A stretch of DNA of 36,945 nucleotides, from positions 1 to 36,945 of the forward strand of contig NIVC01004726.1 of the NCBI GenBank assembly GCA_002269645.1, given 5' to 3'. A model generated the notes under the pieces. It made no database searches. It was not told the DNA's origin and saw only the letters and a list, made by a program, of their open reading frames with translations. A program made the translations under genes and the position numbers. The DNA is from Macrostomum lignano (lineage: Eukaryota). Positions 8,327 to 36,400 of this stretch are shown here, piece by piece. Position 1 is the first letter of the stretch. Each line of letters opens with the position of its first letter.

Positions 8327-8332
8327 AATAAA
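8327..8332 (+). terminator. Candidate polyadenylation signal (AATAAA) of NSF; a second AATAAA lies near 8457
   Basis: AATAAA 6 nt after the TAG stop; T-rich DNA downstream. Confidence 0.4.
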
Positions 8333-8359
8333 TATGTGGATGTTTAATAACATTATCAA

Positions 8360-12130: not shown

Positions 12131-12231
12131 GTTCGCGAGTTTCATTGGTTTTTATTTATTATTTATAGGGGATCAAATTTTGAGGGGGTCAAATGACATC
12201 CTCTCCTACTTCCACTCCCAATGGCAAGCCT

Positions 12232-12645
12232 TAGGTCAGATGACCCCCTGTCCATTACCTAGCTTACACTGGCTAGCTTTGGGGTCAGATGGTCCCCTGT
12301 CATTACCTAGCTTACACTGGCTAGCTTTGGGGTCAGATGACCCCCTGTCCTTACCTAGCTTACACTGGCTAGCTTTGGGGTCAGATGACCCCCTGTCCTT
12401 ACCTAGCTTACACTGGCTAGCTTTGGGGTCAGATGACCCCCTGTACATTACCTAGCTTACACTGGCTAGCTTTGGGGTCAGATGACCCCCTGTCCCTTAC
12501 CTAGCTTACACTGGCTAGCTTTGGGGTCAGATGACCCCCTGTCCATTACCTAGCTTACACTGGCTAGCTTTGGGGTCAGATGACCCCCTGTCCATTACCT
12601 AGCTTACACTGGCTAGCTTTGGGGTCAGATGACCTCCTGTCAACT
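12232..12645. repeat. 48-bp minisatellite (TTACCTAGCTTACACTGGCTAGCTTTGGGGTCAGATGACCCCCTGTCCA-like), about 8-9 copies, intronic
   Basis: Period 48 (16-aa periodic ORF LPSLHWLALGSDDPLS); each unit contains the inverted repeat GGGGTCA-GA-TGACCCC. Confidence 0.95.
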
Positions 12646-12792
12646 TCCTAGCCTACCCTACGAGTATATTGAACTCTTAATCTGTCAATTAGATGATGCT
12701 ACTTCTATTATTTAACATGCACTACAGCTGATTCAGCCGCTTACAAGTGGTGTAGATAAAGCGGGTATATTGAATTTTTATTCCCCCCCCAG

Positions 12793-13275
12793 CGCTACGA
12801 ACAGCGACGCGCGGAGTCGATCAAAGAGACAGAGGAGCGCTGTCGCCGAATCTCGGAGACCATGGAGGAGATCAGCCTGCAGGCGCCCGGACCCGAAAAT
12901 CAGTCGGAGCCGCAGCAGCCGCAGGAGCAGCCGCAGGAGCAGCGACCGGAGCAGCAGCAAACTGGGAACGGTGAAGTCTGCAGCAGCGCTGGTTCGCGCG
13001 TGTTTTACCGACGCGTGGCTAAACTGCAAGTTGATCTCGACTGCCTGTTCACCAAGTTCAACCGGGAGATTGTGACGGTTCGGGGTAGACCAGTGGACCT
13101 GCTGGAAACGCTTGAATGGCCCCCAAAGCCGCCGCCGCCGCAGCAGCAGCAACCTGAAGTTGAACAGCAAAAGCAGCAGCAGCAGCAGAAGCAGCAAAAT
13201 AGGATTGCTTGTCAGACAGATGATCAGATTTGCAACAACTGCGGCCAAGATCCCAATGCTTCTCGTATGGCTTGA
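12793..13275 (+). CDS. Exon 3 (terminal) of the tandem stathmin-like-domain protein, Gln/Pro-rich
   Basis: Acceptor TTCCCCCCCCAG|CGC at 12792/12793; in frame with ORF 12862-13275. Begins RYEQRRAESIKETEERCRRISETMEE; ends with TGA. Confidence 0.75.
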   Translation, partial: RYEQRRAESIKETEERCRRISETMEEISLQAPGPENQSEPQQPQEQPQEQRPEQQQTGNGEVCSSAGSRVFYRRVAKLQVDLDCLFTKFNREIVTVRGRPVDLLETLEWPPKPPPPQQQQPEVEQQKQQQQQKQQNRIACQTDDQICNNCGQDPNASRMA

Positions 13276-14299
13276 GAAGGTTTATTGAATTACTCGTATT
13301 TTTATGAACGATTTTTTCGTGAATTAAGTTTTTTTCCAGTTTAATAGCGAGTCATTAAGAGGCACGTTTAATTTATTAAATGCACATCGAGGTTTGAGTC
13401 GTTCTAATTTTAGAAAGAAGCGGCACCCAGTCACATTATTGAATGTACATTCGAGTGTAAATGTTCTAAGGCTTGTGCTCGTGTTTTCTTGTTGTGCTCA
13501 CTAATTCCCGTTCAAAATGTTAGCGTGACCGGAATCGCTAGAGTCATTGCAAGCACCTCACTAGCAACTCTGGGATGCTTCTTGGCCTAGGTACCGTTTT
13601 CATCGGCAATGATGTGTATTAAAGTTTCGTTTAATTATTTCCTATGTTTCTATTATTAGCAACGTTTTAATTACAGTGGCAATTTTATAGCGATATAGAA
13701 CTGCAATACAAGTTTGCAAGCTTGGCCAATATTAACAACCAATACATTCTTAACACTAGCTGACTGACTGGAAGAATATACATAACGTTATGAGTTTTAT
13801 GATCAGTTCAGGCCCAATATTTTTGACTAACCCTCATTTTATTGTACAGGATATTTGTCTAACTTCGAACTTGTAAACTGTAATGAACATAAATCTTATC
13901 TTCGTGTAAATTAATATTGTCTCGTCATTTGTTAATACCCTGCAATCATCCTACCAGATTAATTCAAGTAATATAATAAAATCCAGATTATTTAAATGCT
14001 TTTTACTCTTAATAATTCCTTTCTGTAGATACTTGTCTGCACTCGGCATGAACCTTGTAAACACATTGTAAACACTTTAGACAGCTTGTTATTCAGTTCA
14101 TAGTACTTTCAGTGTGATGTAGATTTACAGATTTCTTTCATTAATGCTACGTCATTTACATTGACCAGCTGTTTAATGTTTTGGTTTCTTTTCAGTTTAA
14201 AATTTTATCTTTAAATACAACAATTTTCAATTGTAACTTTACTATTAAAAACCGAAATTCAACATGCTTTTACATTTTTTTGCTGGCACTAGACATGCG

Positions 14300-16262
14300 A
14301 TGACATTCTATAGATCATATGAGACGAGACTGTATGGACTAAAGACGAAATTTTATAAATTAAATGAAATGAGATTTTATAGATCCGATGAGGTGAGATT
14401 TTATATATCAGATAAGACACGATTGTATAGATCAGATGAAACGAGATTCTATAGATGAGATGAGATAAGATTTTACAGATCCGGCGAGACAAGATTCTAT
14501 AGATGAGATGAGATAATTAGATTCAATAATTGAGATTAGATACGGTTTTATAGATCAGATGAGACGAGATTTAATAGATCCGATGAGACAAGACTCTATA
14601 GATAAGATGAGACAAGACTCTATAGATCAGATGAGACAAGACTCTATAGATCAGATGAGACAAGACTCTATAGATCCGATGAGACGAGACTCTATAGATA
14701 AGATAAGACAAGACTCTATAGATCCGATGAGACGAGACTCTATAGATAAGATAAGACAAGACTCTATAGATCAGATGAGACAAGACTCTATAGATCAGAT
14801 GAGACAAGACTCTATAGATCAGATGAGACGAGACTCTATAGATCAGATGAGACAAGACTCTATAGATCAGATGAGACAAGACTCTATAGATCAGATGAGA
14901 CAAGACTCTATAGATAAGATGAGACAAGACTCTATAGATCAGATGAGACAAGACTCTATAGATCCGATGAGACGAGACTCTATAGATAAGATAAGACAAG
15001 ACTCTATAGATCAGATGAGACAAGACTCTATAGATCAGATGAGACAAGACTCTATAGATCAGATGAGACAAGACTCTATAGATCAGATGAGACAAGACTC
15101 TATAGATCAGATGAGACAAGACTCTATAGATCAGATGAGACAAGACTCTATAGATCAGATGAGACAAGACTCTATAGATCCGATGAGACGAGACTCTATA
15201 GATCAGATGAGACAAGACTCTATATATCAGATGAGACGAGACTCTATAGATCAGATGAGACAAGACTCTATAGATCAGATGAGACGAGACTCTATAGATC
15301 AGATGAGACAAGACTCTATAGATCAGATGAGACAAGACTCTATAGGTTAGATGAGACGAGACTCTATAGATCAGATGAGACAAGACTCTATAGATCAGAT
15401 GAGACAAGACTCTATAGATCAGATGAGACGAGACTCTATAGATCAGATGAGACAAGACTCTATAGATCAGATGAGACAAGACTCTATAGGTTAGATGAGA
15501 CGAGACTCTATAGATCAGATGAGACAAGACTCTATAGATCAGATGAGACAAGACTCTATAGATCAGATGAGACAAGACTCTATAGATCAGATGAGACAAG
15601 ACTCTATAGATCAGATGAGACGAGACTCTATAGATCAGATGAGACAAGACTCTATAGATCAGATGAGACAAGACTCTATAGATCAGATGAGACGAGACTC
15701 TATAGATCAGATGAGACAAGACTCTATAGATCAGATGAGACAAGACTCTATAGATCAGATGAGACGAGACTCTATAGATCAGATGAGACAAGACTCTATA
15801 GATCAGATGAGACAAGACTCTATAGATCAGATGAGACAAGACTCTATAGATCAGATGAGACAAGACTCTATAGATCAGATGAGACAAGACTCTATAGATC
15901 AGATGAGACAAGACTCTATAGATAAGATGAGACAAGACTCTATAGATCAGATGAGACAAGACTCTATAGATCAGATGAGACAAGACTCTATAGATCAGAT
16001 GAGACAAGACTCTATAGATCAGATGAGACAAGACTCTATAGATCAGATGAGACAAGACTCTATAGATCAGATGAGACAAGACTCTATAGATCAGATGAGA
16101 CGAGACTCTATAGATCAGATGAGACAAGACTCTATAGATCAGATGAGACAAGACTCTATAGATCAGATGAGACAAGACTCTATAGATCAGATGAGACGAG
16201 ACTCTATAGATCAGATGAGACGAGACTCTATAGATCAGATGAGACAAGACTCTATAGGTTAG
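14300..16262. repeat. 24-bp minisatellite (AGATCAGATGAGACRAGACTCTAT)n, about 70 near-identical plus about 10 degenerate copies
   Basis: Tandem repetition; 8-aa periodic ORFs DSIDQMRQ and LSHLIYRV; degenerate copies at about 14300-14560. Confidence 0.97.
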
Positions 16263-16950
16263 ATAGCACGGAAACATGTGGAATTCCACTGTTCACCACA
16301 CCGAAAGCTGTCGCCTTATTCCCGACAAACATTCTATATTTTCTCCGTCAAGCAACTTATCACTCTCCATTCCAATCAGGCTATAGCTAAAGGCACGAAT
16401 TAGAACGTGACCGCTGGCATGTCAAATCAGGCACGATATGAAGCAATTTTTCTGTCCCAAAATCTTTTATGCACTAAAGTTAGTAAGAGTCTGACACGCT
16501 GAAGGCATGATAGCCATACCGGGTATAGCAAAAAGGAAGATATTTGACACCATCACGCAACATATTGGGCGTGATCAAGGCGGAGATTTGATATAGGAGG
16601 CCTATTTAAGAAGAAATAATCGCTTGCATGATTTGAAGACTCGGAGATATGATTTCAGCAGGATTTTATGCTTACAATTCTGTAATAAATATTCTTCAAG
16701 TGTCGCTATCTTAATGGCTTAAAGAGAACTAAAATTAGAACAACAGTATAAATCGTCCCTTACATTTGAGTACATTGAAAAATATTCCCTGACGTCATCA
16801 GAACATTTGAGAGACTATCTCGTTTACAACTATCAATGGAGTGGGGGCTAATGACTTCAATGGACAATTTCCTAATAACCCGAGCGTTGCTCAAAAATCA
16901 TTTCCTACTGTTTAGCATCGCGAATTTTACCGATTACACAACCGCCAACC

Positions 16951-17635
16951 CGAGAGAGCCAGCCCGAATCTTCCACAGAACCGCAGCCATAGCATTTCAG
17001 AGAGAGCCAGCCCGAATCTTCCACAGAACCGCAGCCATAGCATTTCAGAGAGAGCCAGCCCGAATCTTCCACAGAACCGCAGCCATAGCATTTCAGAGAG
17101 AGCCAGCCCGAATCTTCCACAGAACCGCAGCCATAGCATTTCAGAGAGAGCCAGCCCGAATCTTCCACAGAACCGCAGCCATAGCATTTCAGAGAGAGCC
17201 AGCCCGAATCTTCCACAGAACCGCAGCCATAGCATTTCAGAGAGAGCCAGCCCGAATCTTCCACAGAACCGCAGCCATAGCATTTCAGAGAGAGCCAGCC
17301 CGAATCTTCCACAGAACCGCAGCCATAGCATTTCAGAGAGAGCCAGCCCGAATCTTCCACAGAACCGCAGCCATAGCATTTCAGAGAGAGCCAGCCCGAA
17401 TCTTCCACAGAACCGCAGCCTAGCATTTCAGAGAGCCAGCCCGAATCTTCCACAGAACCGCAGCCATGGCATTTCAGAGAGAGCCAGCCCGAATCTTCCA
17501 CAGAACCGCAGCCTAGCATTTCAGAGAGAGCCAGCCCGAATCTTCCACAGAACCGCAGCCTAGCATTTCAGAGAGAGCCAGCCCGAATCTTCCACAGAAC
17601 CGCAGCCGAGCATTTCAGAGAGAGCCAGCAGCCCG
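16951..17635. repeat. 48-bp minisatellite (AGAGAGAGCCAGCCCGAATCTTCCACAGAACCGCAGCCATAGCATTTC)n, about 14 copies
   Basis: Tandem repetition; 16-aa periodic ORF REPARIFHRTAAIAFQ; small deletions in the rightmost copies. Confidence 0.97.
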
Positions 17636-18404
17636 AACCGTATATGGTTTAAGGTTTTATAGGGTTGCTCATGACCTTTCATAGAATATTTCCTAGCATC
17701 CTCCTGAGCATTACAGAGGAAACACTGCTTCTTATCAATACATACTCCCTGATTGTAAAATCGATACAACAAAGGTATCTGAAAGTTGTCTATCAAACGA
17801 CAGTAAAATGAAAGCTTACATCAATTATCGTAGATAATACGCGGTATACGATTTAGATATTGTTAGATTGAACTAATGTAAATAATAGAGTACGAGCGTA
17901 AGGGCTAGTTTTATTGCGCCTTTTTTAGTCAGTTCAACAAAGACAATTTACTTGAAAAAACATGTGATCAATATGGTTTAGCAATCAATGTTGCGAAACA
18001 AATCAATGTTATGCATGGCACGCACAGGAAACCCGAACAAAGCAAGCGAAAAAGAAAGAATTCACAGAAAAATATTAAGCGACGCAAGACATAAAAAGCA
18101 CCTGCAAACTTTGGCAAAACAAAAAGCGCAGCAGCATGTTTATACAGCAGCAAGCACAAACAACACTAATAATATTCTATACAATGAAAGCAGTCTGTTG
18201 CATTGTGAAAAAGCAGACACGACTTCAGTAAGTAGTACTAATAAATGGAATTAAATCGCTCATTGATAGAGCTAGCAAGAACATCTATAGAATATCCGTT
18301 GCTACTTACCGGTATAGTGAAAAAAATCATCGTCATGGCGAAAATTTGAAATAATATTTGAGCGATTTACCAGTATAGCCAACAAAAGTAATCTCGCGTT
18401 TGCT

Positions 18405-19015
18405 TAAGACCTAAATGAACATACTTTAGTCCAATCTTAGGACCTAAAACAGGCCGATTTCAGCCCAATCTTATGACATAAAACGGGCCTATTTTAGCCC
18501 AATCTTAGGATCTAAATAATCTTAGGTTATGACCTAAATAAACATACTTTAGCCCAATCTTATGACCTAAATAAACATACTTTAGCCCAATCTTAGGACC
18601 TAAATAAACATACTTTAGCCCAATCTTATGACCTAAATAAACATACTTTAGCCCAATCTTAGGACCTAAATAAACATACTTTAGCCCAATCTTATGACCT
18701 AAATAAACATACTTTAGCCCAATCTTATGACCTAAATAAACATACTTTAGCCCAATCTTAGGACCTAAATGAACATACTTTAGCCCAATCTTATGACCTA
18801 AATGAACATACTTTAGCCTAATCTTATGACCTAAATAAACATACTTTAGCCCAATCTTATGACCTAAATGAACATACTTTAGCCCAATCTTATGACCTAA
18901 ATGAACATACTTTAGCCTAATCTTAGGACATAAAACGGGCCTATTTTAGCCTAATCTTAGGACCTAAAAGGGGCCTATTTTAGCCTAATCTTAGGACCTA
19001 AACAGGTTTATTTTA
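18405..19015. repeat. 33-bp minisatellite (TTTAGCCCAATCTTAKGACCTAAATRAACATAC)n, about 18 copies including degenerate ends
   Basis: Period 33 measured (AACATAC at 18541 and 18574); both edges are diverged. Confidence 0.93.
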
Positions 19016-19291: not shown

Positions 19292-19741
19292 TCACGAGCC
19301 GTGTCTCAACCGCATATGCTCCCTGAGTCCAGTAACCCCAACGCAGATCAATCGACACCGATGGCACCTGTACTTCGGCTTACTGCCAGTCCCAGTAAAA
19401 TCATGCCGTCGAGCTCTGTGCTCAGCCAGCTTGGCCGCGCTGGCCTGAAACTGGCCGCACACCGGACAACCGTAAGAGTCAGCTGGCGCAGTGGATGGCC
19501 GCAGGGCCAGAGTGGCGAACAAGTCAGGATCGACAATGCACACCTGCCGATGACTGGGCATGTCTACTGCCGGCAGTTTCAAATTGCAACGATCGCAAGC
19601 AATTAGAGGAGCTGAAGCTAGCAATTCAGCGGCTGCAATCGCCTCGGCGGAGGCGAGAGAAGAGACAGCAAAAATGGTTATTTGCTGTTTCTGCATCTGC
19701 TGCCACTGAGGAGCCTGCTCCATGTTCTGTCCTCCCAACAC
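19292..19741 (-). CDS. Zinc-finger protein (two C2H2 fingers and one C2HC-like finger); single-exon gene or terminal exon
   Basis: CDRCNLKLPAVDMPSHRQVC, YGCPVCGQFQASAAKLAEHRARRH and YRCHRCRLICVGVTGLREHMRLRH. A pyrimidine tract followed by AG near 19635-19690 on the - strand could be a splice acceptor, so the true start is uncertain. Confidence 0.75.
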   Translation of the reverse strand: MLGGQNMEQAPQWQQMQKQQITIFAVSSLASAEAIAAAELLASAPLIACDRCNLKLPAVDMPSHRQVCIVDPDLFATLALRPSTAPADSYGCPVCGQFQASAAKLAEHRARRHDFTGTGSKPKYRCHRCRLICVGVTGLREHMRLRHGS

Positions 19742-19960
19742 TTGCTGTCACTGAAGATTTAAGATGACATTTCGGAATTTTAACCAGTGAAAAAGGACAA
19801 ATATTTATTAGATACATGTAATATTGTGCTAGTGTTACAGAGTTATCCATGTATGCAAGCTAAGCAGCATTGGGGCCGGGATTCCTACGCAGCTTAATAA
19901 GGCTGTTTGCGTCATCGTCAACACGCGGCGAATTAGGCTGAGCTGCAGTTCACCCTGTTG

Positions 19961-20279
19961 TAATAATAATAATGATAATAATAATTGATTACACCTGCCC
20001 CAATAGGCAGATGTGCAACCGACAGCTCAGCCGCAGCTATTGAGCGGCGCATCTGAAGGCTGCGTACGGCTGTTCAGTCCAAGGACTGGGGGTCGCCACA
20101 CACACCCTCAATTACCCCAGCTAATGCTGGCACCCATTTTACAGCTGGGTGAACTGAAGCAATGCAGATTTGTGTCTTGCTCAAGGACACAAATTGTTCA
20201 GAGTGCCGGAATGGGTCAAGAATCGAACCCCGACCTTTCAGTCGTGAGTCGGACACTCTAACCACTAGGCTACAACCCC
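19961..20279 (-). mobile_element. Full-length tRNA-derived SINE with a CORE/Meta-like central domain and (TTA)n tail
   Basis: The - strand reads GGGGTTGTAGCCTAGTGGTTAG (A box, 20262-20272)...GGTTCGATTC (B box, 20220-20229)...TGTGTCCTTGAGCAAGACAC...CAGTTCACCCAGCTGTAAAATGGG (central domain, 20133-20191)...TTATTATTATCATTATTATTATTA tail (about 19961-19985). Confidence 0.85.
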
Positions 20280-23200
20280 CACTGTGAGACTGTGATAGGG
20301 TAGCAGTCTGAGCTGCAGCAGACATATACATGTACAGGGTGTGGAGTCACGACCCCCCGCAGTGCCAGCACTATGCACAGGCTGTGCGCAGCCCTCAGAT
20401 GCGCTGCGCAATTGCACAACACCAGACGGGGCGCATTTTTACATTAAAAATAATAAATTTCTAGTCAAAGGTGTGGCTAGAATCGGAATTTCAAAACACG
20501 TGTAATCTTTTACAGTTGAAAATCTTTTATAACCATACAGCTAGTGGCCGGCATCCTATGCATGCAGCCCTGGAAATTCTGTAGCAAATTATAAAAGTTC
20601 ATTATAAATTATAAACCTTGCTGTCAATAGCTGATGTATGCCGCTTGCCCCACGTCATGTTTCGAAATCGAGAGTTGATATTCAACAAATATTAACAGTA
20701 CACTTGTAGCAAGCTCTGGAGTGCTAAGGTGAAAAAATATAGAGTGAATGTAGTTCCAATTGCAACGCAATAGTGGAAAAACGTCAATACAGGATCAGGC
20801 GGCGACAATTTCCCATCGATAGATACTGATATATTGTGATTACGCAAATCACAGCTAAAGCTGTGCTACATAAATCAAGATAATCAACACCTAGTGAAAG
20901 CAAGTCTCACTTAATGAGCAAACGTCTCCACCAAATAGACAGACTCAAGTCCAGTGTACCGAAAACCTTGTGTGCGGGAGTTATCTACAAATTCTCGTGC
21001 GTTGCTGAGCAATGCGGGTTTTACATAGGTAAAAATGAAAGTTGTCTATTCCTGAGGCGTTGTACATTAAACAGCTAAAGCCCGCCATGAACATCCGACT
21101 TGGTGGTAGAGGGGCGAGTGTCCTGACCTATGCCCTTGCCTCTCAATCAGTGCCTTCTAACTTTGCTACCCATACCTGCTTATTTGCATCATATTGGCTT
21201 ACTAGGCTTAAAAAATTACCTTCTTTCTGGTATAATTGCCTGAAGATGCCGATTGTTTGATTCCTTAAAAGTGTCACGGGATTTAGTGTTTGTCATAGGT
21301 TTCAAATGTAATTCCCGAGTGGTGACTAAGCCACCCAGTCATCAAGGCGAATTGAGAATTAAAAAACGCTGCACCGCATGAACTTTTCGTCCTAGTTCAC
21401 TGTCTGTCCTGGCTTGTTTCCCAGCGCTCTAAAGACGAAATTAAGGAAGTCATTTCTTCTCATTATAGGAACGTCTCAAAATACTTTTCTTCCCCCAACA
21501 TGCAGTGAGCACAAAGAGGAAATAGGGGAAATACAAAAAAAATCGAGAGACCCGCTACCCTCATGCATGTGAGAACTGGAAACTGGACACTGTCGCAGCG
21601 ACCGCCAAGTCAAGAGGGAAACTTCTAGGCTTCTAGAAGGGGCTTCTAGGCTTGCAGTTGAGAATTGTCTAAAACCGAATTACCTACCCCACCTCAGCCT
21701 CCCCTATTGGCAACTGAAACGCATAGGAAAAATCGACAATTTCAGGAGAGGATCTCTCGCCAAAACCCATGTAGCCCCCACCCATACGCGGACCATGCAG
21801 GATGCGCGGACAGGCAGTTTATCCGCGGAACGGGGGGAAATTTAAGGAAGAAGAGGATGAAGGGAGGAGAAAATCGAGCAGGCAAAAATTTCCCACTCCC
21901 CTATTTCCCGAATCCTCACCTCGCAGCACGCGAGGGGCAGAGGCATCGGACTAAGGCTGCTACGGACCCGGTGCAGAGATATATGGAAAACAGGACAGAA
22001 CGCGGGATTGCAAGTTGACGCCGCACCCATCGTTGCCGAGAGTCCGTGCAGCCAAATTAGATTGACCAAAACTCCCCGCACCCGCAAAGGGAAAATCGCT
22101 AGTCCCAATTTCTACTCCAGGAACTACTCCCGCATCTAAGGGGAAAATTGCTAGCAAGCGAACCAGTACGGATCAAACTAATACAAATTTAATGAGATTA
22201 GGCGTCGCCCGCATCAATCGATACTTCATTGTGGCGATAGTAACTTATTTGAACAGAAAGTAATTCAACAACCAACTTGCCGGAAAATCTATATGCTCGT
22301 ATAATGGTGGAAATCATTTTAAGATTAGGCAATTTTTTTCTATTTTAAGTCTTTAATTTGTACTATTGAGCACTTGAGTTCGTATCGACTAAGTTTTAAT
22401 TTTTTCTGATTAACGGCGGTATTAAATTTGAGCGCAAATTCAAGCATCCAAACAAAGTTTCCAAGAAATGTAAAGCAGAATAGGAAAATAAACAAGCTAC
22501 AAATAAAATATACGCGATCGCTAATCGCACGCGGCCGACTAAATTCTTTAATCAGAGCGAATCCCATAGTGAGATAAATACGCTCGTAGTATATGCTGAA
22601 AATAAGAACTCGATAAAGCTGATAGCAAAGAGAACTTGTTGCCCAGAGAAGGAAAGAAATCGGAGAATAGGGAATTAGAGAGAGAGAGAGGGTAATACTA
22701 GTAGGCAAAAAGGGAGCCAGCATGCAAGCATTGGCATGGAAATCTGATTGGATTACAAAGCCTATATAGAGAAGCCCAATGCGGATTGAACCCCCAAGTA
22801 CGGTAAACTGCAAGAGAAACTTCTGCAAAATATTTCAGAGGCCTTTAAAGTCAGCCCCTCACCACAGATTCTCGATCTCTTTAAAAAAAGCTTCCTGTTT
22901 CAGACATATTCGAATAAAACCGGGCATTAGGCAAAAGTATAGGCCTAATGGATAATAGGCTCCGAAAAATTCAAGAGGAAATTAAAAATAAAAGTAACAA
23001 AGTGTCTCAGCAACGGACAAAAGTGCAAATTGAAGCCCAACTAAGACACGGCTGGTTGGTCAGCCATGGGAGGTTCCTTTAACTCAAAATATGATTTTTA
23101 AGCCTCTCAAGTGATTAATTGCAAGATTCTGCTTGAATAAATTTTAGCTTTGCAACTTGCTGAAACATTGCTGATACAAGTCTTCTCTTAAAATCACTGG

Positions 23201-24294
23201 AGCACGACTCAAGGGCTAAACGAAGCCCTACTAGAAAATTGAAAACAACAGACATGGAAATCGACTATAATTATTGAATTAAAGGGCTGCTCTGAGACAC
23301 CGAAATGCTAATCAGTCTAGCCTCAATCGTACTACATGTTATATCTAGCCTTGAGCAGACACACGTGCACATGGGAGCAGCTTGAAAATCAATGGGCCTT
23401 AGACATCGATTAGCAGTGTAATCTTCTTTGCTTACTGTCCTTACCAAGACAAATTACCTCCCGCAGAGTTAGAAATCGATTAGTATTCTGAGACGATTCG
23501 ATTGAACATAATCTCAGTGCACTAACTGTATCGAAAGGACATAATCGATCCAGTATTTAATCTCTTCATTGGAGAGATCCGGCACCTACTTGACAGCAGA
23601 CAGAAACAGCTGCGGTGATAAGACATCGTCTAAATCCAATTTAAAATATTCCTTTTTCATTCTCTCTTTTAGCTGGCAATGTCCTCTCTATAATAATTTC
23701 CTCTCTAAAATAGAGCTAGAATCTTTGTACCGCCTCCAGCACTAAGTATCATCTCGCTAGCGCGAGTCTTCAGATCGACAGACACTTAGGCTTAACCTCT
23801 CGACAAGCCAGTCTCGTTTCCACAGCCCCCCCCTCGGGCAAAATAAGAAGTGCACGAAGAAAGGTGAAACTATAAAACAACCTGCTTGTACTCGTCAGAG
23901 GCTGGGAGGGAAGCGATAAATGGGCCCTTTAGAATCAAGGATGTGTCAAAAAGAGCTAGACTGAGGCGGAAGGCCTTTTTGTTTCAATAGATGGAATGGC
24001 AGCGAAGAGTTTGTGCTGCTTTGCGCGTGTATTTATATGAGATTTACAAACAACGCCAGATTGAGGGGCCAAGGGAGGTGCGAAAAGGTGGCATGGCGTG
24101 ATTGGCTACGCCAACCCCCCCGGCTTAGCGAGCCGGCTAGCTTGGCGCGTACCCACCCCACCTCAGCTAGACAGAGGCGGGGGGGGGGTTTCCAGTGCGG
24201 CTGCACTGGTGCTGCCGGTCGCGTAGTCTGGCCGCCACACAGCTCCCCCCAGCACCGAGCTAGGCCCCGAACGTCGGGTGGTAGCCGAGGCAGC

Positions 24295-24832
24295 GAGAGC
24301 GCCGAGGAGCGGGCGCCGAAGGCGGCGGGGGCGCGAGGCGGGCGCCGAAGGCAGCAGAGCGCCGATGGCAGCAGGTCGCCGAGCGGGCGCCGATGGCAGC
24401 AGGTCGCCGAGCGGGCGCCGATGGCAGCAGGTCGCCGAGCGGTCGCCGGGCGGGCGCCGAAAGCAGCAGGGCGCCAGGCGGGCGCCGGGCGGGCGCCGAA
24501 GGCAGCAGGGCGCCAGGCGGGCGCCGAAGGCAGCAGGGCGCCAGGCGGGCGCCGAAGGCAGCAGCAGGGCGCCAGGCGGGCGCCGAAGGCAGCAGCAGGG
24601 CGCCAGGCGGGCGCCGAAGGCGGCAGGGGCGCGAGGCGGGCGCCGAAGGCAGCAGGGGCGCGAGGCGGGCGCCGAAGGCAGCAGGGCGCCAGGCGGGCGC
24701 CGAAGGCAGCAGAACGCCAGGCGGGCGCCGAAGACAGCAGGGCGCCAGGCGGGCACCGATAGCAGCAGGGCGCCAGGCGGGCGCCGATGGCAGCAGGGCG
24801 CCAGGTGGGCGCCGAAGGCAGCAGGGGCGCGC
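24295..24832. repeat. Very GC-rich ~21-27-bp minisatellite (GGCGGGCGCCGAAGGCAGCAGGGCGCCA-like) inside the LTR element
   Basis: About 20 variant units; responsible for the overlapping Ala/Arg/Gly/Pro-rich ORFs on both strands. Confidence 0.9.
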
Positions 24833-25207
24833 GGCCGTACCACACCAGAGGCAATCGACAGTCAGTTGCCGCCGTGAGCCGGATCGATGCTCCTGCACAG
24901 AGGCTGGGGACGTTAGGCTAGCAGCAGCGGTGCTAACCTAGAAGTAGCTGCAGCGTGTGGCGCTGGTTGGTCCAACGCGGGGGCCGAAAGGCGAGACCCC
25001 AGGAGCTACCGGGGGGCGGGCTGACTGGGCCGATTCGTGCTGCTGGGCTGCGGTGCTGCTGGGCTGCGGTGCTGCTGTGCTGCGGTGCTGCGGTGCTGCG
25101 GTGCTGCGGTGCTGCCTGTTGCAGTCGGCCAAGGCGGTTGGCTGCCAGGACCGCACAGGGCCGACCAGGTAGGCCCAGCGTTCCGCGCTGGGTGTCGGGC
25201 TCACCAA

Positions 25208-25485
25208 TGAGGCGGAAGGCCTTTTTGTTTCAATAGATGGAATGGCAGCGAAGAGTTTGTGCTGCTTTGCGCGTGTATTTATATGAGATTTACAAACAAC
25301 GCCAGATTGAGGGGCCAAGGGAGGTGCGAAAAGGTGGCATGGCGTGATTGGCTACGCCAACCCCCCCGGCTTAGCGAGCCGGCTAGCTTGGCGCGTACCC
25401 ACCCCACCTCAGCTAGACAGAGGCGGGGGGGGGGTTTCCAGTGCGGCTGCACTGGTGCTGCCGGTCGCGTAGTCTGGCCGCCACA
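25208..25485 (-). promoter_or_regulatory. 5' LTR with CCAAT box (25347-25351) and TATA box TATAAATA (25276-25283) on the - strand
   Basis: The - strand reads AGCCAATCA...~65 nt...CATATAAATACA; the same motifs occur in the 3' LTR at 24101-24105 and 24030-24037. Confidence 0.7.
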
Positions 25486-26671
25486 AAACTGTATTTATTT
25501 TGTGATTACAGCGTCAGCGTCACGCTGGAAGCTTTAGCCCGTCTCGACTCAATCCGATCACAAGGCATAAAGGCAAAACAGCTAAAATACAACCACATCG
25601 ATTCAGTCTTTGTAAATAAAACAAAACTGTCCAGTCTAAAAGTGCAAAACATTCGCTATAAATTTGATCTTAATATCCCATTCCTTAGATTTTAGAAATA
25701 TGCACTTTATAAGCCTTTACTTTATATTATTAATAATGCCTGACTCGAGATGGAAATCGGTCGTTAGTCAACACAGATGGAAAGCCCATTCGACTGTACC
25801 ACCAGGAATGTTTAATAATGGGATCCAGATCCAGTCCTTAAGTGCAATCTAGGAGTGGCCCACAAGAGGGAAGTAAAAGGCTTGGTTGCGGATGGGAGGA
25901 CCATGAAAAACTTTTTTTGATGCTCGAACGCAAGCCTAACTCCTATCGAAATGCTTTGTGTAATTCAGATGCTTCCCACACATAATACACCTACTAAACT
26001 ACGCACAAAAACATACTTTGCAAAGCAATTCGTGCGGCCACGCCGGGGACACTTTGCCAGAATCAGCAAAACAGAAGAAAGTTAGTGCCAGGAAACACAC
26101 ACACACACACACGAATACAATACATAAATGTTTCCAGAATCTACGTCAAAAAAGATTTATTACCTCATTCGTTCGACCCCGTATATCCGTCCTCTCATAG
26201 CGTCGGAACAAAAAAACAATTTGCTGCTATCTACCAAAGCTATAATACCGTCTGACTGACTGACTGAATGTCGTGATAAAGCAAAACTAAGAAACATAAT
26301 CCAAATGAAAAAATGAGATTTCGGATGCAAATTCAATCCAGTACCACGAACTTACACGACAGGAATTCAGACAAAGCGACGGAACGTTCAAACGTGACAC
26401 CCAGAGAGAATTGGGAGACAGAAAGAACAACGATAACATTTTAACTGCAGTGCTGCAAAGTATGGGTGTCTGCCATTAAATTAACCTTTGCTTGTCACTA
26501 CATGCATTCCGTCACAAGCGTCACAACCAAATTACAAACCATATATTGAATCACTGAAGAGAGGGATACTGTAGACTACAGAAGAAGCAAAGGGAAAGTT
26601 GCCTACCCGAAGATCCAAGAACTAGTGGTAGAAGTAGCCTACCGAACTACCAGGGTGGTGCAGTAACCTTA

Positions 26672-26810
26672 GGGTCCGTTCACATTACCGCTCGTAGCTC
26701 TGTGGATCCAAGATTGATTGAATCAATTTGCAGTTGGTTCACGCCCATGTTAAATTTGATTTGAGAAATCTTAGACCCGTGGAGCTTACTGTGGTAATGT
26801 GAACCCGCCT
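26672..26810. mobile_element. Candidate PIF/Harbinger-type (Tourist-like) MITE, about 139 bp
   Basis: Perfect 12-bp inverted core GTTCACATTACC (26678-26689) / GGTAATGTGAAC (26793-26804); G-rich start and C-rich end; TTA on both flanks (26669-26671 and 26811-26813). Confidence 0.55.
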
Positions 26811-29602
26811 TTACTGAAGGACCGGGAGTAGCAGCGAGATACCAAAAACCACAAGGGTTGGACTAGAGAGGGCTAGTAAAAACACTGGTAAATTCCGGGT
26901 AGACATACGAGCAAAGTCATGTGTGGTCTACCAAAAACTAGAATGGTAAGCTAGCAGCGGCCTTCATAAAGATTAGTTAGAAAGGAGCGCCGACCCAAAA
27001 AGGGATGAAGCACACATTAAATTAAATTTAGACAGAGCTAAGCCAGACACCAGCATAAATAAAAAACTCAGCCAATGTTTGTAGATAAGTTGCACAAGTG
27101 CACGCGAACTAGAGGCGAATCTGATTGATTAATATACTCGCTCGTTTCGTTAAAAACTTAAAGCTCCAAGTCGCAGGAAAACCAATGCTAATCTGTGCTA
27201 ATATCTATACGAAATCCTCTGATACATTTACTGTGGATAAAAAATGCATACAGTGCGGTATTGCAGCAAAATATTCATAAAACATAGCGATAGTCCCTGC
27301 AGCGACTCAAGTGTTTACACAAAACCCCAGACATCGGACTATACAAAGGGGGCCGAAGTTCGGCTACACAGCTTTGTTTACCCAACACACACGCATATGG
27401 GGGAATTTACAAGATTACCTTTCGCATGTCTTTGAGCGATATGGGAGCGTAAGATAAAGGCAACTAAATAAATAAACTAATTAGATTCGTCTAGCTACAT
27501 TCGCATAATAAAGGTAGATAAACTTTCACATCGTCGCAGATCAATTGATCAAATGTGGCGAAACGGAAACAGAAAAATAAAACCATAAATCAATACTTTG
27601 TAACGCAGCTCTACAAAGCAGGAATCAAAATATTGTTAAGACACGCAACTAGTCGGTCCGGAAAAATAACAGAAAAAGCAACTGTCTTCGTTAAAGAAGG
27701 ATGTAAAGTTAATTTGAACTATTGTAGAAAACATACTAGATATCTGGATTTTTATCCTTGAAGAAAAAGTCATATTTTGTACACTCTTCAATAGCATTAA
27801 AAATTTATTAAATTTTCTATATAGCTGGGGTGGATCTCGTGAAGCCACTTGCCAGACAAATTACAAGTGACAAGTGACATTCCGCCAACTAATGCGTTCC
27901 ATGAGAAGTTGTGACAAATCTACAAGTTACAAGTGACAATTAGTCAAGCGCTATCCTGACAAGTGAAAAAACTTGTCAAGCGTTTCGTTTAACAAAACAT
28001 CCGGCATTTAAATGATTTGGAGTGTTTTGTTTCGTATCCCTATACAAAAAATAAACTAACATCTGCTACTCATTCGCTTTGACTCATATTAATTATAATG
28101 CCTTCGAATTGCAAGGGGAATAAGAGCTAACATATCTCGAAGCACGCTCAGTCAGTCATTTCCCAAGACAGAATCTAATGCATCTTTACACAATCTATCA
28201 GTCAAAGAAAGCTTACTTGCTCACCGGTGCCGAAAATATATGGTCGGTGAAATAAAAAAAATCGATTTTAACACCCGTCACCATTCTTAAGCGACATGAA
28301 AGGATACTAGCCTCTGAGTGACAGAGATTTCGCATAGATATTTTTGCAACTCAGCCTTATATGACATGCAGCCATGAAGACTTACAAAGAAATAAAATTA
28401 TAATTAAACCCCATCGACAAAGTCGATATCGTTCTATCGTTCGATATCGACAAAGCCATAAAAAAGTTAAAAACGATAGGACTTTTTGAAATAATTAAGC
28501 CAATGCTGAGCAGTGCTATTAGCTAGGATACGCTCGTAACATTTCCATGACTACAATATATTTTTACTTACAGTAAGCTAGTTGATCTAACTCCGTTATA
28601 TTGGGCTCTATATATGCGTGGCCACACTATTATGAACTCATTCCATTTTTTAGATACTAAGTGCAAAAACTAAATATCGATGAAAATTTCTATATGATAA
28701 ATACGCAACTATGGGCACTGAAAATTTAATAATACGAGCTAAAAGAAGTCTCTCAGACCGGAAGCTGGAATGCTCTGAGGGCTATTGTTAAAGCCGCTGC
28801 CTTAACTTCTCGAATGCAAGGCTTGCGTGACCCGATGAAAGACAGACAGGCAGGGAGCAGAGCTGATAGCGCAGGAGCCAGAATTACAGTGTAACAGTGA
28901 CAAGTCTGTCAGAAATCATCAAATATTGTGAATATCCACACTGGGTCTGGGAACTTCGAGGGACACTGGCTAGATTCGTTAGTGTGCCACATAAAGTTGT
29001 CTTTACGCAAGCAAAGTAAGAATTTTTGTCACGAAGCTCTGCATGCTATCAGCCGCCAATGTGGGAAAATAAAAAAATTACCCGAGGTTTTGACATGCAA
29101 CACACTTATTGCATCTAGCTTAGAATTCCTGATGACAGCTAGAAATATAGCTCGTAGAAGACCATAAGAAATCTCCCGGGAGCTGGCTTTCTTATCCATT
29201 TACTCGTCAGAAAACCCACAAAATCAAAAGGACATTTACGAGAGCACAACAAAAAGATGGGAATAGGAAAAGCATAGAAAAACTGGCGAAAGCCAATCAG
29301 ACCTAACCACGAGCGGGAGACGGCGAGAGGCCAGAAATATAAGGTTAAAAACGAAGAGTGGGAAAAAGCTCGGCTACATCAAAATCCCTGGCCTGAGGCA
29401 CTTGCTCTCTAACTCCAAATTCCAGCCAGAAAAGCACGCTCCAAAGGCAGCGACTATCAGACAGTGTTTGAAGGCCATGACCAAACAAAAGGCTTTGTTG
29501 CCAACTAATTTCCTAACACAATAGCCTACAATTGTTTCCACTTTGCCCAGGAACATTACTAATACGACAGCGACCGACGCTTGAAGCGCATTCAACGACA
29601 GA

Positions 29603-30968
29603 ATGCCAGACAACCAAACAACTAAGATAAACTACAGCAAAAGCGATATGGCATTAGACATGGCCCTGCTAATAGCTCTCTCAGTTATCGGCGTTTTTGG
29701 CAACAGTCTCATCATAATCTGCGTGATAGTACACAAGAAGATGAAAAATGTCACTTCGCTCTTTGTAGCGAACCTCGCTGCAGCCGACCTGTTCTTGGCC
29801 GGTTTAGTCGCCCCGGGTTCAATTCGAATGCTATGGCACCAACCCGGCATGCCAAATAGCCCCTGGTGCAAATTGTTCGGTATTGCACTGTTCTTTAGCT
29901 GCGCCGCTACTGTCAACTTTAGCGCTTTGATAGCACTCACTCGCTACATTGTTATCTGTAAGTCTCACCTGGTCGTGCAACTGTTCAGACACAAGCGAAG
30001 CGCACTTTGGTGCATCGGACTGTGGACATATAGTGTGATACAAGTGGCACTGCCATCAGGCACTCAGCTATTCCAATACAACTACAATCAGGTGATCGAC
30101 GTCTGCCACTTAAACTACACTAAACACCCAATTGCAATTGCCGTGTACATCAATGTCCTGTGCTTTTGCCTTGTGTGGTAGTCTGCATCGCCTGCTACGC
30201 ATTGATTTTTTCCGTACTCAGGCGCACAAGACGAAACTTGCAACAGCACATGGGAGCCGCCAATGCCGCTTTTCTGGCCAGAAAACTGAGCCGCGAAAGA
30301 CGTGCAACGCTGCCGCTCTTTATATCATAGTGTCATTCTTTCTTCACTGGCTACCGGTAATGATTTTATTCGGCGTTGATCCAAGCTTTCAATACAATCC
30401 TCAGATTCATCGCTACCTTGGCATATTTAGCATATCAAGCGCCTGTGACAACTGGATTATTTACGGCATACTAAACAGAAACTTTGCCGATGGATACCGT
30501 TTAGTTCTGTGCTACTGGCGACGGATTTGGGGAGCTCAACCAGCTGGCAGCGTCGATCAGAAACTGGCCCGGCGTGCTAGCAAGGCCAACCATTCGCACC
30601 CGCCGTCAGAACTGCGACAAGCCAATCATCCCATGGCCATTCCTCTAGTCAGCGAAGAGGATTTCAACGATCTAAGCGCCAACAATTGCAGATCCCGAGA
30701 GGCGGAGCAGATCGCCGAAGATCACGATTATAACGATGGTTCATCATCGAATTCTGAATCGGATTCGGATGCTGGGGCTGAGGACGAGTTTCAGCGCATC
30801 AACAGCCGATGCTGCAGTTATCCTAAAAACACGGGACAGCAGCAACAGCTGCATCTGCAAGTGCAAAGAGACGGAAGTAGCAACACGCAGAGCTTTGAGC
30901 TAACACCCGTGCATCAACTGTTAGCAGCTCCTGCGTCTATTGATGATGAAAATGAGGACAAGGAATAA
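29603..30968 (+). CDS. Intronless class A (rhodopsin-like) GPCR with melatonin/moody-receptor-like motifs; two apparent 1-bp deletions; about 455 aa if repaired
   Basis: TM1 GVFGNSLII, TM2 FVANLAAADL, TM3 CKLFG...IALTRYIVIC, TM4 W, and ECL2 Cys. A bridging third frame 30175-30330 reads VVVCIACYALIFSVLRRTRRNLQQHMGAANAAFLARKLSRERRA. TM6 IIVSFFLHWLP, TM7/H8 CDNWIIYGILNRNFADGYRLVL, then a Ser/acidic tail. Confidence 0.88.
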
Positions 30969-32099
30969 GTTATGCCGATAGATCGTACTTTTGAATAACC
31001 GTTAATACATTTATACTCAGCTAATGGATACTAAATTGACGATGAGTTGCTTTAAGCGTAAGCGTAAATACCAATTCTCGTCACAACTTTACTAAAAACG
31101 TTGCTTTGCATGTTACTACTTTGTATATGCATTATAAAGTAAAAATATCTCGGAAGTTGCAACAGCTTTGTACTATATCCAGAAATCCAAATACTTTCGC
31201 GTGGTATAATGCCCTGATTCAAATTACAGACTGCAGAATATAAAGCAGATTGACAAATGCCTAAAGAATGACGACAGTGTCAACGATAACCGTTTGCATG
31301 ACAAATCAAGAGCAAATTCGTGTTCTAGCATTTTTTTAGACATTTGCATGCCTAAACTATAGCAGAACGTTTCACAAATCAAGCTATTGAATGAAAGTAA
31401 TAACAAGTAACTATAAGCCAATAATAGGCTGCAGTAAGCGGCTGAGAAACAATAGTCACGTGAGATGCCAATGCCATCAGCAAGTCAAAAATCCACCTAT
31501 CTAAATGAGATAATAGATAAAAAACTACAAGCTGGAAATACGATGAGGGCTAGAACAAACAAAAGCGAACTCAATGCGAAATTGCAGAGTAGCATATAGC
31601 TGAGCGAGTAAATTCGCATGAAATTTGAGTTAGCTACAGCTCCGGGTTAAATAAAGCCTCCTCCAAGTGATCCTAAACGACGTCAAAATGTAAGCCAGAA
31701 TGATTCGATCAGTCAAAGAGTCAGGATAAAAGACGAAAAATTGAAAGATGCAGAAAAGTCAACAGTTAATCCAGCCACTAGAAAAGGGCAAAAAGCGTTC
31801 TCTAGCTAGTTCAAGTCCAAGAGCCAATGCACAATATATGGACCTGTGGCAATGGGGTGGAAATTGTATATGAGCACTTAAAGCACTTATATGAGCAGAA
31901 CAGGGGCAGTTCAGGTACAGTATCTACATAATATCCCAGTGGAGCACTGGCGCCCGCGGTCCAACATATGGCGCTGGGCGCCAGAACATCGAACCTCGAC
32001 GCCGAGTTTTTCAGAATTTTTACTGTACTACTTATTATCAAAAGGGCGGATAGTGGAGTACACTGTGTTTAAAAGCACGTTTTTTTATTATTTAAGGTG

Positions 32100-35000
32100 T
32101 CTATTATTAATAATTTCCTGTTCTTTTGTCTAAATTTTTATCTGCCGAACAATTTTTAGGACTCAAACATCTTTTGTGTCTAAAAAAACATATTATCGAA
32201 AAAAATTCTCGACCAATAATGTTTCTAAAAATGCTACTGACAGTAGGCGATTGACATTAAGAAGATTGCTAAAACAATTTCCTGTTTTGTCAAATTTCTG
32301 GTTTATGATTATGTCTTAAAGTTCTGAAAGAATTCTAGAAAAATATGAGTACATGTAGGACAGAGGAAATCAGGAAAAAATCTAGATTTCCCAAGCTGTA
32401 TCAGTACACTGAGACTTGATTTTCAACAAATAGTTATATTTGGCTAGTCAGTGTCTAGCACAAAAAGAATCATATCTCTATCTCATTCAAGCATTTGCTA
32501 TATGCACGCTTAAATTTTATCCAAAACTGGAAAAGTCAACAATATACAGAGTGAATTGTCATCCAGAAAATACTTAACACTCTACTGTAAGTAGCAAGCA
32601 GTTACGTGTAAAGTTTACATATAATTTTTCATGAAATTAAACAACTTTTTCCTTATTGATTGTTTTTTTATAAAGTAATCAGCTTCATTTGCCAAAGTAA
32701 AAAAAGTAACAAAATACTATTGAATAGCCCTATAAATCTTCAAAATGGTAAAATCTTAAGTCTTAGTTACAAGGGCTTAAAGGTAAGAAAATATAAGCAT
32801 TGCATTTTAATAGAAATAAAATAGAGTTCTACCATAGTTACAAATATGGTCATGGGAATTTATGGACATAAGGGTTTTTAGATAAAATATACATATATAG
32901 TTATAGGAATACATATTTCCCATATATAGTTCCTAAAATATCTAGTAATATGAGCTATTTAGGACCTGAAAAGACTTAAAAGATCATTGGAGACCCTTGA
33001 TTAATGGTTAGAAAGGTGTAGAATAATAAAAAATGAATATTAGTTTTAATGCTTTTAAAGGGGGAACTCTTAATAAGTCCTAAGAATAGACCTAGGGACT
33101 CAAGCAATATAGAATTTTTATTCCTTATGCACATTAAGTTATTAGGGTCGTATAAGAAATAAAGTCAAGATTTATATTTTTATTTCCCATGCAAAGGGCC
33201 TAGATAAACTACAAATATAACTAAAAAAACAAAATAAGTAAAAAACCAAATCTAAAACTATATAAAAATAAATCTTGTCTTATTAATACTGAATAAGTTT
33301 TTTTTCATCAGGGCCCATATATATTATTGATGAATTTTGTGTTTTTATCAGTGAAGTCAAGTCAATAGTCATAATTTTGATTAGATATAAATTATCACTT
33401 AGACTAAAACCTTTTAAGGGTTTATTAAAGCGATACAATAAACAGTAATATTCAGCCATGTAAATTAAGTATACACAGAATTTCTAGTTCTGGTATTTTT
33501 CTTAGTATAAAGAATAATGACTAGGGCCTAAAGACATGTGTATATGCATTTTGAGCCTAACTAAATACCACATGATCTTTGAACTATAGATAGCAACAAT
33601 AAATACATTAAAAAATTAAAGCTAGCATACATATACAACAAACAGAACTTCAAAAGTAATATTTTACCCAAATGCAAAGGCAACTATCTAGTTGTTAATA
33701 ACCATAGGATAATTTCAAAAAAATCTTTATAAAAAGGGTTTTGGATTTTTTAGATTTCTTAGTTTTTGCTTCTGTAACTATAACCTGAGTTTTACCTAAC
33801 TAGTATGATGTAGTTTTCTATGAAAATACAATGTCATACATGTATCTAGAGAGCCTTTTTAGAACATAGCTATGCTTTACATAAAATTTGAATATTTTCC
33901 CTCTTTGGCTTAAGCTATTTATTGCTAATCTTATCTTTATATTTATGTTTTTCAATCACTTAGGTAAGTTTTCTTTTTTCTATATTTTTTGTCTTATAAA
34001 CTTAAGTTTTTGACTTGTCCCTTAATAGTTTAAGTGCCTTTTTGACCAGTTTTGTTATATACCTATTGGCTATTGGCTACTTTATCTACTAGTCATATTG
34101 GCTAGGTCAGCTAGGTATTGCCCATACTTTCAAAAATAATAATTTCATGATGATGCATAAAAATGTCAATGCAATACTGCCAATAGGACCTGGGCTAGAG
34201 TATCCTTACACTGAATACATTATATATATAGTATATTTAGATAATAGTAAAACATACCATTTTTATTGATGACAATTCAAAGTAATTAAAAGCACTTAAA
34301 TTAATTAGTCCATTGAAAACAAAAGCAATTAATTAAATAGGCCCTATATCAGGATAGTGGTGCAGGTGCAACTGTACAAGCAAATTGCAAGAGTGAACTA
34401 AGAGATTTTTTAAATACAGGTCCAGAGTTTTAGGCTATAAATCTAGTGAAAAGCACCCAGTTTGTGACATAAAATGAAACCAACTGTTGCCTGTTGTTTT
34501 GAAAGTTTTTATAAATGAAATCACATCACAGTCACACCAATCCAATGCAAACCTAAATGTGATAATATTGAAAAGCAATATAATATATGGTTGTAAACTA
34601 ATTCATTCGAATCGAAAGACACTAAAGTTAAAGACTAGCTATTTAATCATGATTACAGTTACTTACAAAAGATTATACAGACATGTAAGTTATATTCTAT
34701 TCTATTAGGGCATTTCCGTCAATTAGGCACTATCGGAAAATTACACTTCAACAAACAGAAAATGATGAATTGTAGCTTAAGCCAGCTAATTGAAGTCAAA
34801 CAAGGACTTAAACTGAAAAATACAACCACTTTTGCTCAATTTAAAGCTATTAAAGATTGTTAATCGGCAAAACTAATGTTGAATAAACCATTTTAAACTT
34901 ACGTAGACGCCACTTTTTTGGATGTCCAAACACACAATTTTTAACTTCAACATTAAATAAAAGAGCGAAAAAAACATTTTTTATAGTAATTCTCTTTGTT

Positions 35001-36400
35001 TCATGAAAAAAACACATTAAACTTTGTTAAAATCATTCCTTTTCGTTACAACACCTGCAAGAAGTCATTGATTTTTGTCAGTTTTCTTGCTATACCAAAA
35101 ATTATAAACAGTAAGTTTTTGTATCATTTGTACTCATGTTGTACCCTCTCATTTACTCATAAGGCTTTCAATCTACACGTTTTTTAGCTTAAATGAAGGA
35201 AAACATCTTTGCGATAATGTATCAGTATATTTTTTAGCAATGAATTTGCTTAATACATTTTTCTAAGACATTAATTTTTTTTCGATGTGACATCTTAACC
35301 ACAAGATTGTACTCATGTTGTACCCAATAATTTTTTTTAGTGCTTTTTATTAGCTGAAAACGATATATTTATGGATTGCTGACATACAGAGCTTCACAAA
35401 AAGTGGTCTGCTGAACCTTAATCTGTCAAAATACCTTAAATATTAACATTTAAATGTAGTAAGCACACTACTTACACGAGATGTATTTTCATGTTGTACC
35501 CTTTATTTTATTTTTCGCTAGTTTTTTTTCTCAAAATCAGTCTTACAAGACTATCATTAAGTATAAAAGCTGGAAAATAAAACAGTTTCACATTAATTTC
35601 TTGTTTATTTATCAATAAAAATGTAATTTATATTTTGCACTATAGTATGTAGATAGTAATTTACATAGTATTAAATCAATTTTCCCCACATTTACTTGTA
35701 ATATTGCTTCAGAAAAACTTTCTCTAGATTGTGGAAGCATATGCATTTCTTGCTGCTTGCAAAGTTGCACTGGAACTTCTGAATAATTACGGTGATCGGC
35801 TAGTTACTGAAAAGTAAAATTAGAGATTTACGTTCGGTATATCGCGCAGAAAAATTTTTTTGACAAAGTTAAAAAATATCGTATGAACTTATGCGCAAAA
35901 ATAACAAAATCTGAATTGAAAAGTTGATTAAAAGCATTAAGAAACAGTTAAAAAATTATTGACTGAAAGAAAGTTAATTATAAGCAAGCAATTATGTCTC
36001 AATATAAAATTTTATTCTCCTACGGTATTAATCGTCTTCTTAGATCAGTATAACTTTTATCGGCAACTTTTATTGTTACCAGAAAATTTCTTGTGCTTCT
36101 ACAAGATAAAAAAAGAAATTTAATAACAAATTCTAGTTAGATTTCCTGTTTTCAACATTTTTCGTCTTCTTTGCACACTCGGACACAATTTGTGTCCCTA
36201 TTTGGCGGAAATGCCCATTAGTGTAGTTTGCACGAAAACTATTCTTTCACGCGTTTAAATTGTAAATGCGCGCTTTTTAACAGTGAAACAAAAACTAAAA
36301 ATTTAATTCAGTATTATACGGCAAAAGTTTATATACGAACAATAAATTATTGTCAGTGAGTTTTCAACTTGACTTTTTTCGCTGTTGGTGTTTATTCTTT
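32100..36400. other. AT-rich non-coding tract with no credible ORF and no large tandem array
   Basis: Visibly very low GC; only short, low-complexity ORFs in the track. Confidence 0.7.
35128..35502 (+). repeat. Three copies of a (TGTAC)TCATGTTGTACCC motif spaced 179 and 176 bp apart
   Basis: CATGTTGTACC starts at 35135, 35314 and 35490; the spacers show little obvious similarity. Confidence 0.5.

Follow-up and report, generated by a model that had tools for sequence, protein, structure and literature searches.

What is the 1.5 kb of DNA that starts and ends with identical repeats in a contig of the flatworm Macrostomum lignano? The contig (NIVC01004726.1, 36,945 nucleotides, the whole of which we call the window) carries at positions 23962-25485 what the original prediction described as a young long terminal repeat (LTR) element, similar to a terminal-repeat retrotransposon in miniature (TRIM), that keeps its signals for reverse transcription and has no coding capacity. 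The window is animal DNA, with an open reading frame (ORF) for a rhodopsin-type G protein-coupled receptor (GPCR), an AAA-ATPase exon and many minisatellites. We argue that the element is very probably one copy of a non-autonomous M. lignano LTR retrotransposon family, either TRIM-like or a small version of the large retrotransposon derivatives (LARDs). We propose that a CsRn1-type element mobilises it in trans.

Structure and signals of the element

The two repeats are in direct orientation at 23962-24239 and 25208-25485. Each is 278 bp long, they have 0 mismatches, and the identity breaks off exactly at both repeat ends. When the window was compared with itself by BLAST, tandem arrays excluded, this pair was the sole long dispersed direct repeat. 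Shuffled sequence gave 0.00 chance matches to a 33-mer of the LTR. The element totals 1524 bp, of which the interior is 968 bp. The boundaries and the identical TG...CA repeats had been predicted correctly.

The element makes sense only when it is read on the minus strand. If it is read on the plus strand the left repeat is not followed by TGG and the right repeat is not preceded by a purine tract, so that orientation was rejected. The original prediction implied the minus strand without saying so, and the placement of the primer binding site (PBS) and the polypurine tract (PPT) agrees with this. In the sense strand the LTR runs TGTGGCGG...CCGCCTCA, and its termini are TG...CA (TGTGG...CCTCA). 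A motif scan places CCAAT at position 135 of the sense LTR and TATAAA at position 203. On the minus strand these are 25351-25347 and 25283-25278 in the 5' LTR (25208-25485), and 24105-24101 and 24037-24032 in the 3' LTR (23962-24239). The LTR has no heat-shock element.

A single T (25207), read from the sequence, separates the 5' LTR from the PBS TGGTGAGCCCGAC (25194-25206, minus strand). At the other end of the interior the PPT GGGGGGAG (24243-24250, minus strand) is followed by CTG (24242-24240) and then by the 3' LTR. It ends 3 nt before that LTR, and although short it is a candidate primer site. Both signals are where the original prediction put them, a PBS starting with TGG one base past the 5' LTR and a G6AG tract ahead of the 3' LTR. 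Ty3/gypsy elements of the CsRn1 clade have the PBS 5'-TGGTGA(G/C)CCCG(T/A)-3', which is complementary to the 3' end of tRNA-Trp (Bae et al. 2008, PMC2582038). The first 12 nt of TGGTGAGCCCGAC match this consensus at 12/12 positions. The 11-mer TGGTGASCCCG has a single occurrence in the window, exactly at the PBS, against an expectation of 0.00.

The interior is 75% GC, compared with 42.5% for the whole window. It is made up of a leader of about 360 bp, a 28-bp minisatellite and about 30 bp ahead of the PPT. The non-coding leader (24836-25193, minus strand) has no Pfam match and contains about 10 copies of an 8-bp repeat, GTGCTGCG on the plus strand, at 25037-25115. The GC-rich minisatellite (24284-24835) is most of the interior; a tandem-repeat search gave a period-28 consensus, GCGCCGAAGGCAGCAGGGCGCCAGGCGG, with 16.6 copies at 24359-24826. 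The predicted RNA fold of R, U5, PBS and leader is no more stable than that of shuffled sequence (z = -0.43). Immediately 3' of the PBS there is a hairpin with a 7-bp stem (CCCAGCG-CGGAA-CGCTGGG, 25162-25187, minus strand). It is also found in the second copy described below, but the copies are too alike for a covariation test and the fold of the leader as a whole is not significant.

The element has no coding capacity. Pfam gave no match at E<=0.01 for the ten longest ORFs that overlap it, counted over both strands, and there is no gag or pol remnant in any frame tested, which upholds the predicted lack of coding capacity. Exact-product look-ups of the LTR ORF, the internal ORF and the N-terminal ORF of the GPCR found nothing on record. 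A protein search with the sense frame of the LTR returned only horse NBPF repeat proteins. We rejected these as spurious, since they are weak 44% matches summed over 13 tandem repeats.

A second assembly and a second copy

The GPCR ORF of the window matches M. lignano BOX15_Mlig009868g1, which is encoded on contig NIVC01001279.1 of the Mlig_3_7 assembly (locus L002). Positions 1-17347 of L002 are collinear with 19592-36945 of the window at 99.67% identity. Over these 17.35 kb the two differ by 4 substitutions and by 53 indel columns, of which 30 are extra bases in the window and 23 are extra in Mlig_3_7. They are therefore one M. lignano locus in two assemblies. L002 had been tried as a possible homeologous empty site, but as the same locus it offers none. 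The element is at 4374-5886 of L002 and differs from the window by 0 substitutions and by short indels only, mostly in homopolymer runs. Its presence in an independent assembly excludes misassembly.

The comparison also changes what can be said about the repeats. In Mlig_3_7 each LTR has 275 bp, and two 2-nt indels, with no substitutions, are all that separates the pair. Both assemblies contain indel errors, so homopolymer lengths across the window, LTRs included, are not to be trusted. To say that the LTRs are identical amounts to saying that they have no substitutions.

The second line of evidence is another copy. An ORF that spans the 5' LTR, the PBS and the leader matches 1 database protein at 90%, the hypothetical protein BOX15_Mlig030798g1 of M. 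lignano. Its locus (L001) is on Mlig_3_7 contig NIVC01001164.1, where a family copy with unrelated flanks lies at 9509-10881 and is about 98% identical to that of the window. Over 631 aligned bases of LTR, PBS and leader the two copies differ by 6 substitutions, and identity among the LTR pieces is 96-100% (98-99% against the 5' LTR of the window). The PBS is conserved in both L001 and L002, and the single T before it is also present in L001. The L001 copy begins TGTGG... and ends ...CCGCCTCA. It has a perfect 4-bp target site duplication (TSD), with ccctataGGGT before the element and GGGTataaaa after it.

The L001 copy is not intact. It retains the PBS, the leader and the initial ~22 nt of the minisatellite, after which there is a deletion to LTR position 185. 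Its 5' LTR is a 639-bp composite of LTR positions 1-268, 7-136 and 38-278. The 3' LTR is a composite of 185-268, 7-136 and 38-164 plus the last ~12 nt. The junctions are at microhomologies (268|7 at GGCC and 136|38 at AGCC), and both junctions are present in both LTRs. Since reverse transcription regenerates a variant LTR at both ends of an element, we infer that the composite LTR is older than the L001 insertion. The 268|7 junction resembles the joint between two LTRs in tandem from which 16 bp have been deleted, and the duplicated segment 38-136 lies upstream of the TATAAA motif.

The element is thus found at two unrelated loci on different Mlig_3_7 contigs, which makes it dispersed and multi-copy. 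These loci share one coding-free plan of the interior and the same leader-minisatellite junction. A non-autonomous family that propagates accounts for this better than would two separate deletions in place. The original prediction had looked to a single locus and a PBS with no tRNA match as evidence against it. Instead there is a second copy, and the PBS agrees with a published tRNA-Trp consensus. Exact scans of metagenome and viral contigs with a 26-mer of the LTR/PBS junction had no match. A 21-mer of the PBS extended by 9 nt matched two metagenome contigs (L003 and L004). Both are bacterial coding sequences, homologous to one another, and have nothing beyond a 22-mer in common with the element, so we rejected them as a chance match and count them as one independent event.

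The evidence for transcription is indirect: the L001 copy coincides with an annotated model derived from transcripts. Repeat annotations were used to filter the GenBank gene set (PMC5730564). Because BOX15_Mlig030798g1 survived that filter, it suggests that the L001 copy is transcribed and that the family is absent from the repeat library. The ORF of this protein (L001 10001-10339) covers LTR, PBS and leader, so the GenBank entry is a mis-annotation derived from a transposable element. It must be noted that the window and L001 also share a 160-bp segment at 89% identity (window 20008-20168, L001 15106-15260). This is probably another dispersed repeat family.

Alternatives, age and surroundings

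Several observations weigh against a propagating LTR retrotransposon family. One is the TSD in the window. Taking the family TSD length of 4 bp from GGGT/GGGT at L001, the flank at the 5' end of the element is AAAC on the plus strand (25486-25489, GTTT in sense) and that at the 3' end is AGAC (23958-23961, GTCT in sense). These match at 3/4 positions, which random 4-mers would do with a chance of about 5%. A point mutation in 8 flanking bases would be unlucky next to 556 substitution-free LTR bases. The A-run in the AAAC flank is one base shorter in Mlig_3_7. The PBS is 1 position off the bovine tRNA-Trp complement used in PMC2582038. The motif scan found no AATAAA or ATTAAA in the LTR. No autonomous element with the same LTR ends or PBS was retrieved, the protein-based routes having given only the two M. 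lignano proteins named above. The family was seen at two independent loci only, and support for its transcription is indirect, namely the transcript-derived model on L001.

The lack of AATAAA and ATTAAA affects one further claim. The original prediction had read the LTR motifs as CCAAT and TATA boxes. The motifs are there, but with no other polyadenylation signal in the LTR, TATAAA is equally a candidate for that role. It could not easily serve as both, and this leaves the assignment of U3, R and U5 ambiguous.

One can imagine a scenario where the apparent LTR pair is an artefact of assembly or comes from local duplication, tandem or segmental. Repeats are extremely dense here, and indel errors are numerous in both assemblies. 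However, the structure recurs in an independent assembly, a second copy sits on another contig with its own perfect TSD, the TG...CA ends are exact, and both PBS and PPT have the right position and orientation. The second copy and the independent assembly refute this scenario in practice, and we give it next to no weight. Another scenario is that the element is the internally deleted corpse of one autonomous element, which lost gag-pol in place and had it replaced by a minisatellite that expanded after insertion, so that there is no propagating family. The interior is mostly tandem repeat that is capable of local expansion, just two loci were seen, and the L001 copy has been heavily rearranged by microhomology-mediated deletions and duplications. 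But independent deletions would not repeat the same 370-bp leader and leader-minisatellite junction at two unrelated loci. The frames tested hold no trace of gag or pol, and LTRs free of substitutions leave little time for about 4 kb to be replaced in place. We consider this scenario improbable.

The imperfect TSD has to be considered along with a different possibility. Unequal recombination between two family members is expected to produce elements that lack matching TSDs. An imperfect duplication (AGAC and AAAC) beside LTRs without substitutions is what such an event, or gene conversion between LTRs, might leave. The flanks would then come from two insertions and the identity of the LTRs would give no date. 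The genome is also highly redundant with a large duplicated fraction (PMC5730564). On the other hand, a 3/4 match at the family TSD length is better than random and one point mutation in a genuine TSD is possible. There is no second family copy within the 37-kb window. We think it unlikely that the element arose in this way, though it deserves to be kept in mind. It would alter the dating and not the identity of the element.

The age should be stated with this in mind. With 0 differences in 278 bp the divergence between the LTRs is below about 1% (95%), and that dating is undermined if either recombination between elements or LTR gene conversion took place. The insertion had been called young and very recent. 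It is recent, but its age is only bounded and "very recent" goes too far.

The surroundings are themselves repetitive. Minisatellite density is exceptional across 916-19002 of the window. The arrays are 21-bp (916-1333), CTGT (1806-2123), 16-bp (2763-4214), 24-bp (5091-6330), 29-bp (7043-7422), 49-bp (12234-12656), 24-bp with 78 copies (14378-16264), 48-bp (16952-17629) and 33-bp (18527-19002). This agrees with simple and tandem repeats being 15% of the M. lignano assembly (PMC5730564). A near-perfect palindrome at 7438-7640 adjoins the 29-bp array; its 96-nt arms are 98% complementary and are separated by an 11-nt spacer. Between two of the tandem arrays, at 4457-4903 on the plus strand, is the C-terminal ORF or exon of an AAA+ ATPase (Pfam AAA and AAA_lid_3). 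Two ORFs on the minus strand (22340-22828 and 19292-19741) have weak, sub-threshold Pfam matches to secretin-type 7TM receptors (E=0.0037) and to several zinc-finger-like families. Each of them may be an exon of a nearby gene, at a distance of about 1.1-4.7 kb from the element. The rhodopsin-family GPCR is a single exon at 29603-30968 on the plus strand. It appears frameshifted in the window, where two 1-nt deletions relative to Mlig_3_7, at about 30164 and 30328, change the frame between them, and its ORF is intact at 455 aa in Mlig_3_7. This frameshift is almost certainly an assembly indel error and does not make the gene a pseudogene.

Proposed helper, relatives and significance

How would an element that codes for nothing move? 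RNA polymerase II would transcribe it from the 5' LTR, and the RNA would be packaged in trans by the Gag-Pol of a Ty3/Mdg4 element that is autonomous and most likely belongs to the CsRn1 clade. A host tRNA, probably tRNA-Trp, would anneal to TGGTGAGCCCGA(C) one base past the LTR and prime the minus strand. A fitting primer would be a tRNA-Trp-CCA that ends ...CGGGCUCACCA. The G6AG tract would prime the plus strand, and the integrase of the helper would insert the cDNA by its TG...CA ends to give a 4-bp target duplication. In this scheme the use of tRNA-Trp as primer in M. lignano, the choice of helper, transcription, the promoter and polyadenylation roles of the LTR motifs and present-day activity of the family are all inferred. 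The tRNA scans found no tRNA gene in the window or in L001, L002, L003 or L004, an Rfam scan of the window had no match, and a full-text literature search for the PBS string gave no relevant paper.

Members of the CsRn1 clade share a tRNA-Trp PBS, 4-bp TSDs and LTRs that start with TGT (PMC2582038). M. lignano has 137 curated LTR retrotransposon families, of which 9 belong to the CsRN1 clade (Ustyantsev et al. 2025, PMC12801592). Some of these are strongly transcribed and two are strongly heat-induced (PMC12801592). Given the 12/12 match of the PBS, the 4-bp TSDs of the clade and nine such families in the host, one of these nine is the likely helper.

The resemblance to the clade (CsRn1, PwRn1, AgCR-1 to AgCR-14, and Mlig-id36 and Mlig-id55 of M. 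lignano) includes the PBS, the 4-bp TSD at L001 and the TGT at the LTR start. However, clade members measure about 5 kb and are autonomous elements that carry Gag (CHCC motif) and Pol, whereas this element encodes nothing, and its LTR ends in ...TCA rather than ...ACA. Without gag or pol it is no CsRn1 member by protein criteria. It is at most a non-autonomous derivative or parasite of the clade.

Among described elements the nearest in kind is ta-TRIM, from taeniid cestodes (Koziol et al. 2015, PMC4558846). This too is a coding-free flatworm element with LTRs, PBS and PPT, its TSDs are mostly 4 bp, and a Ty3-type element is presumed to mobilise it in trans (PMC4558846). The two differ in that ta-TRIM has an 8-base tRNA-Leu PBS and a proposed helper called lennie (Saci2-like), while the PBS here is of the tRNA-Trp, CsRn1 style. 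The M. lignano element is also in a free-living macrostomorph and has a large internal minisatellite. This comparison is by description only. The TRIMs of plants (Witte et al. 2001) and of an ant (Zhou and Cahan 2012), taken here from PMC4558846, are alike in their terminal direct repeats, PBS, PPT, lack of an ORF and dependence on a helper. They are about 0.5-1 kb with internal domains of 100-300 bp, in contrast to 1524 bp and a 968-bp interior. LARDs are likewise non-autonomous LTR elements with a conserved non-coding interior, but they exceed 4 kb (PMC4558846) and this element is far smaller.

A Wicker-type definition quoted in PMC4558846 sets TRIMs at <4 kb, typically 0.5-1 kb, and LARDs at >4 kb. 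At 1524 bp the element is under the TRIM limit and above the typical size. By this definition it is a TRIM at the large end, with its size inflated by internal tandem repeats. Calling it TRIM-like was sound with respect to its coding-free interior and its LTR, PBS and PPT, but at 1.5 kb it is larger than the classical TRIM (<1 kb). The original prediction also held that miniature LTR elements are much less catalogued in invertebrates than in plants, and this argument from rarity is weakened by the flatworm ta-TRIM that was already described (PMC4558846).

We found no description of a TRIM in Macrostomum in the literature. The family is probably uncatalogued, although the kind is well known and TRIMs are already known in flatworms. 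In PMC12801592 the M. lignano LTR families were mined with reverse transcriptase as the starting point. For the earlier annotation of Mlig_3_7, LTRharvest was set to require a TSD of at least 5 bp, and elements left unclassified were dropped (PMC5730564). An element that codes for nothing and has a 4-bp TSD would be missed by both.

General concepts are unchanged by this, since non-autonomous LTR elements, flatworm ones included, are well established. The finding matters for M. lignano itself, which is a model for regeneration and transgenesis and has about 21% of its genome in LTR retrotransposons. Recognising the family would clean up gene annotation, where at least 1 copy stands as the "hypothetical protein" gene BOX15_Mlig030798g1. 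It would also supply an insertion-polymorphism marker between laboratory lines. A bolder idea, to which we attach only a small chance, is that this is a currently active uncatalogued TRIM with expandable GC-rich tandem arrays. Its LTRs would evolve as promoter segments are duplicated in modules, the 639-bp LTR of L001 being an example, and its retrotransposition would seed minisatellites and add to the unusually high tandem-repeat load of the genome. If the link to CsRn1 is true the family would be a natural reporter of Gag-Pol activity in that clade, some families of which are heat-inducible.

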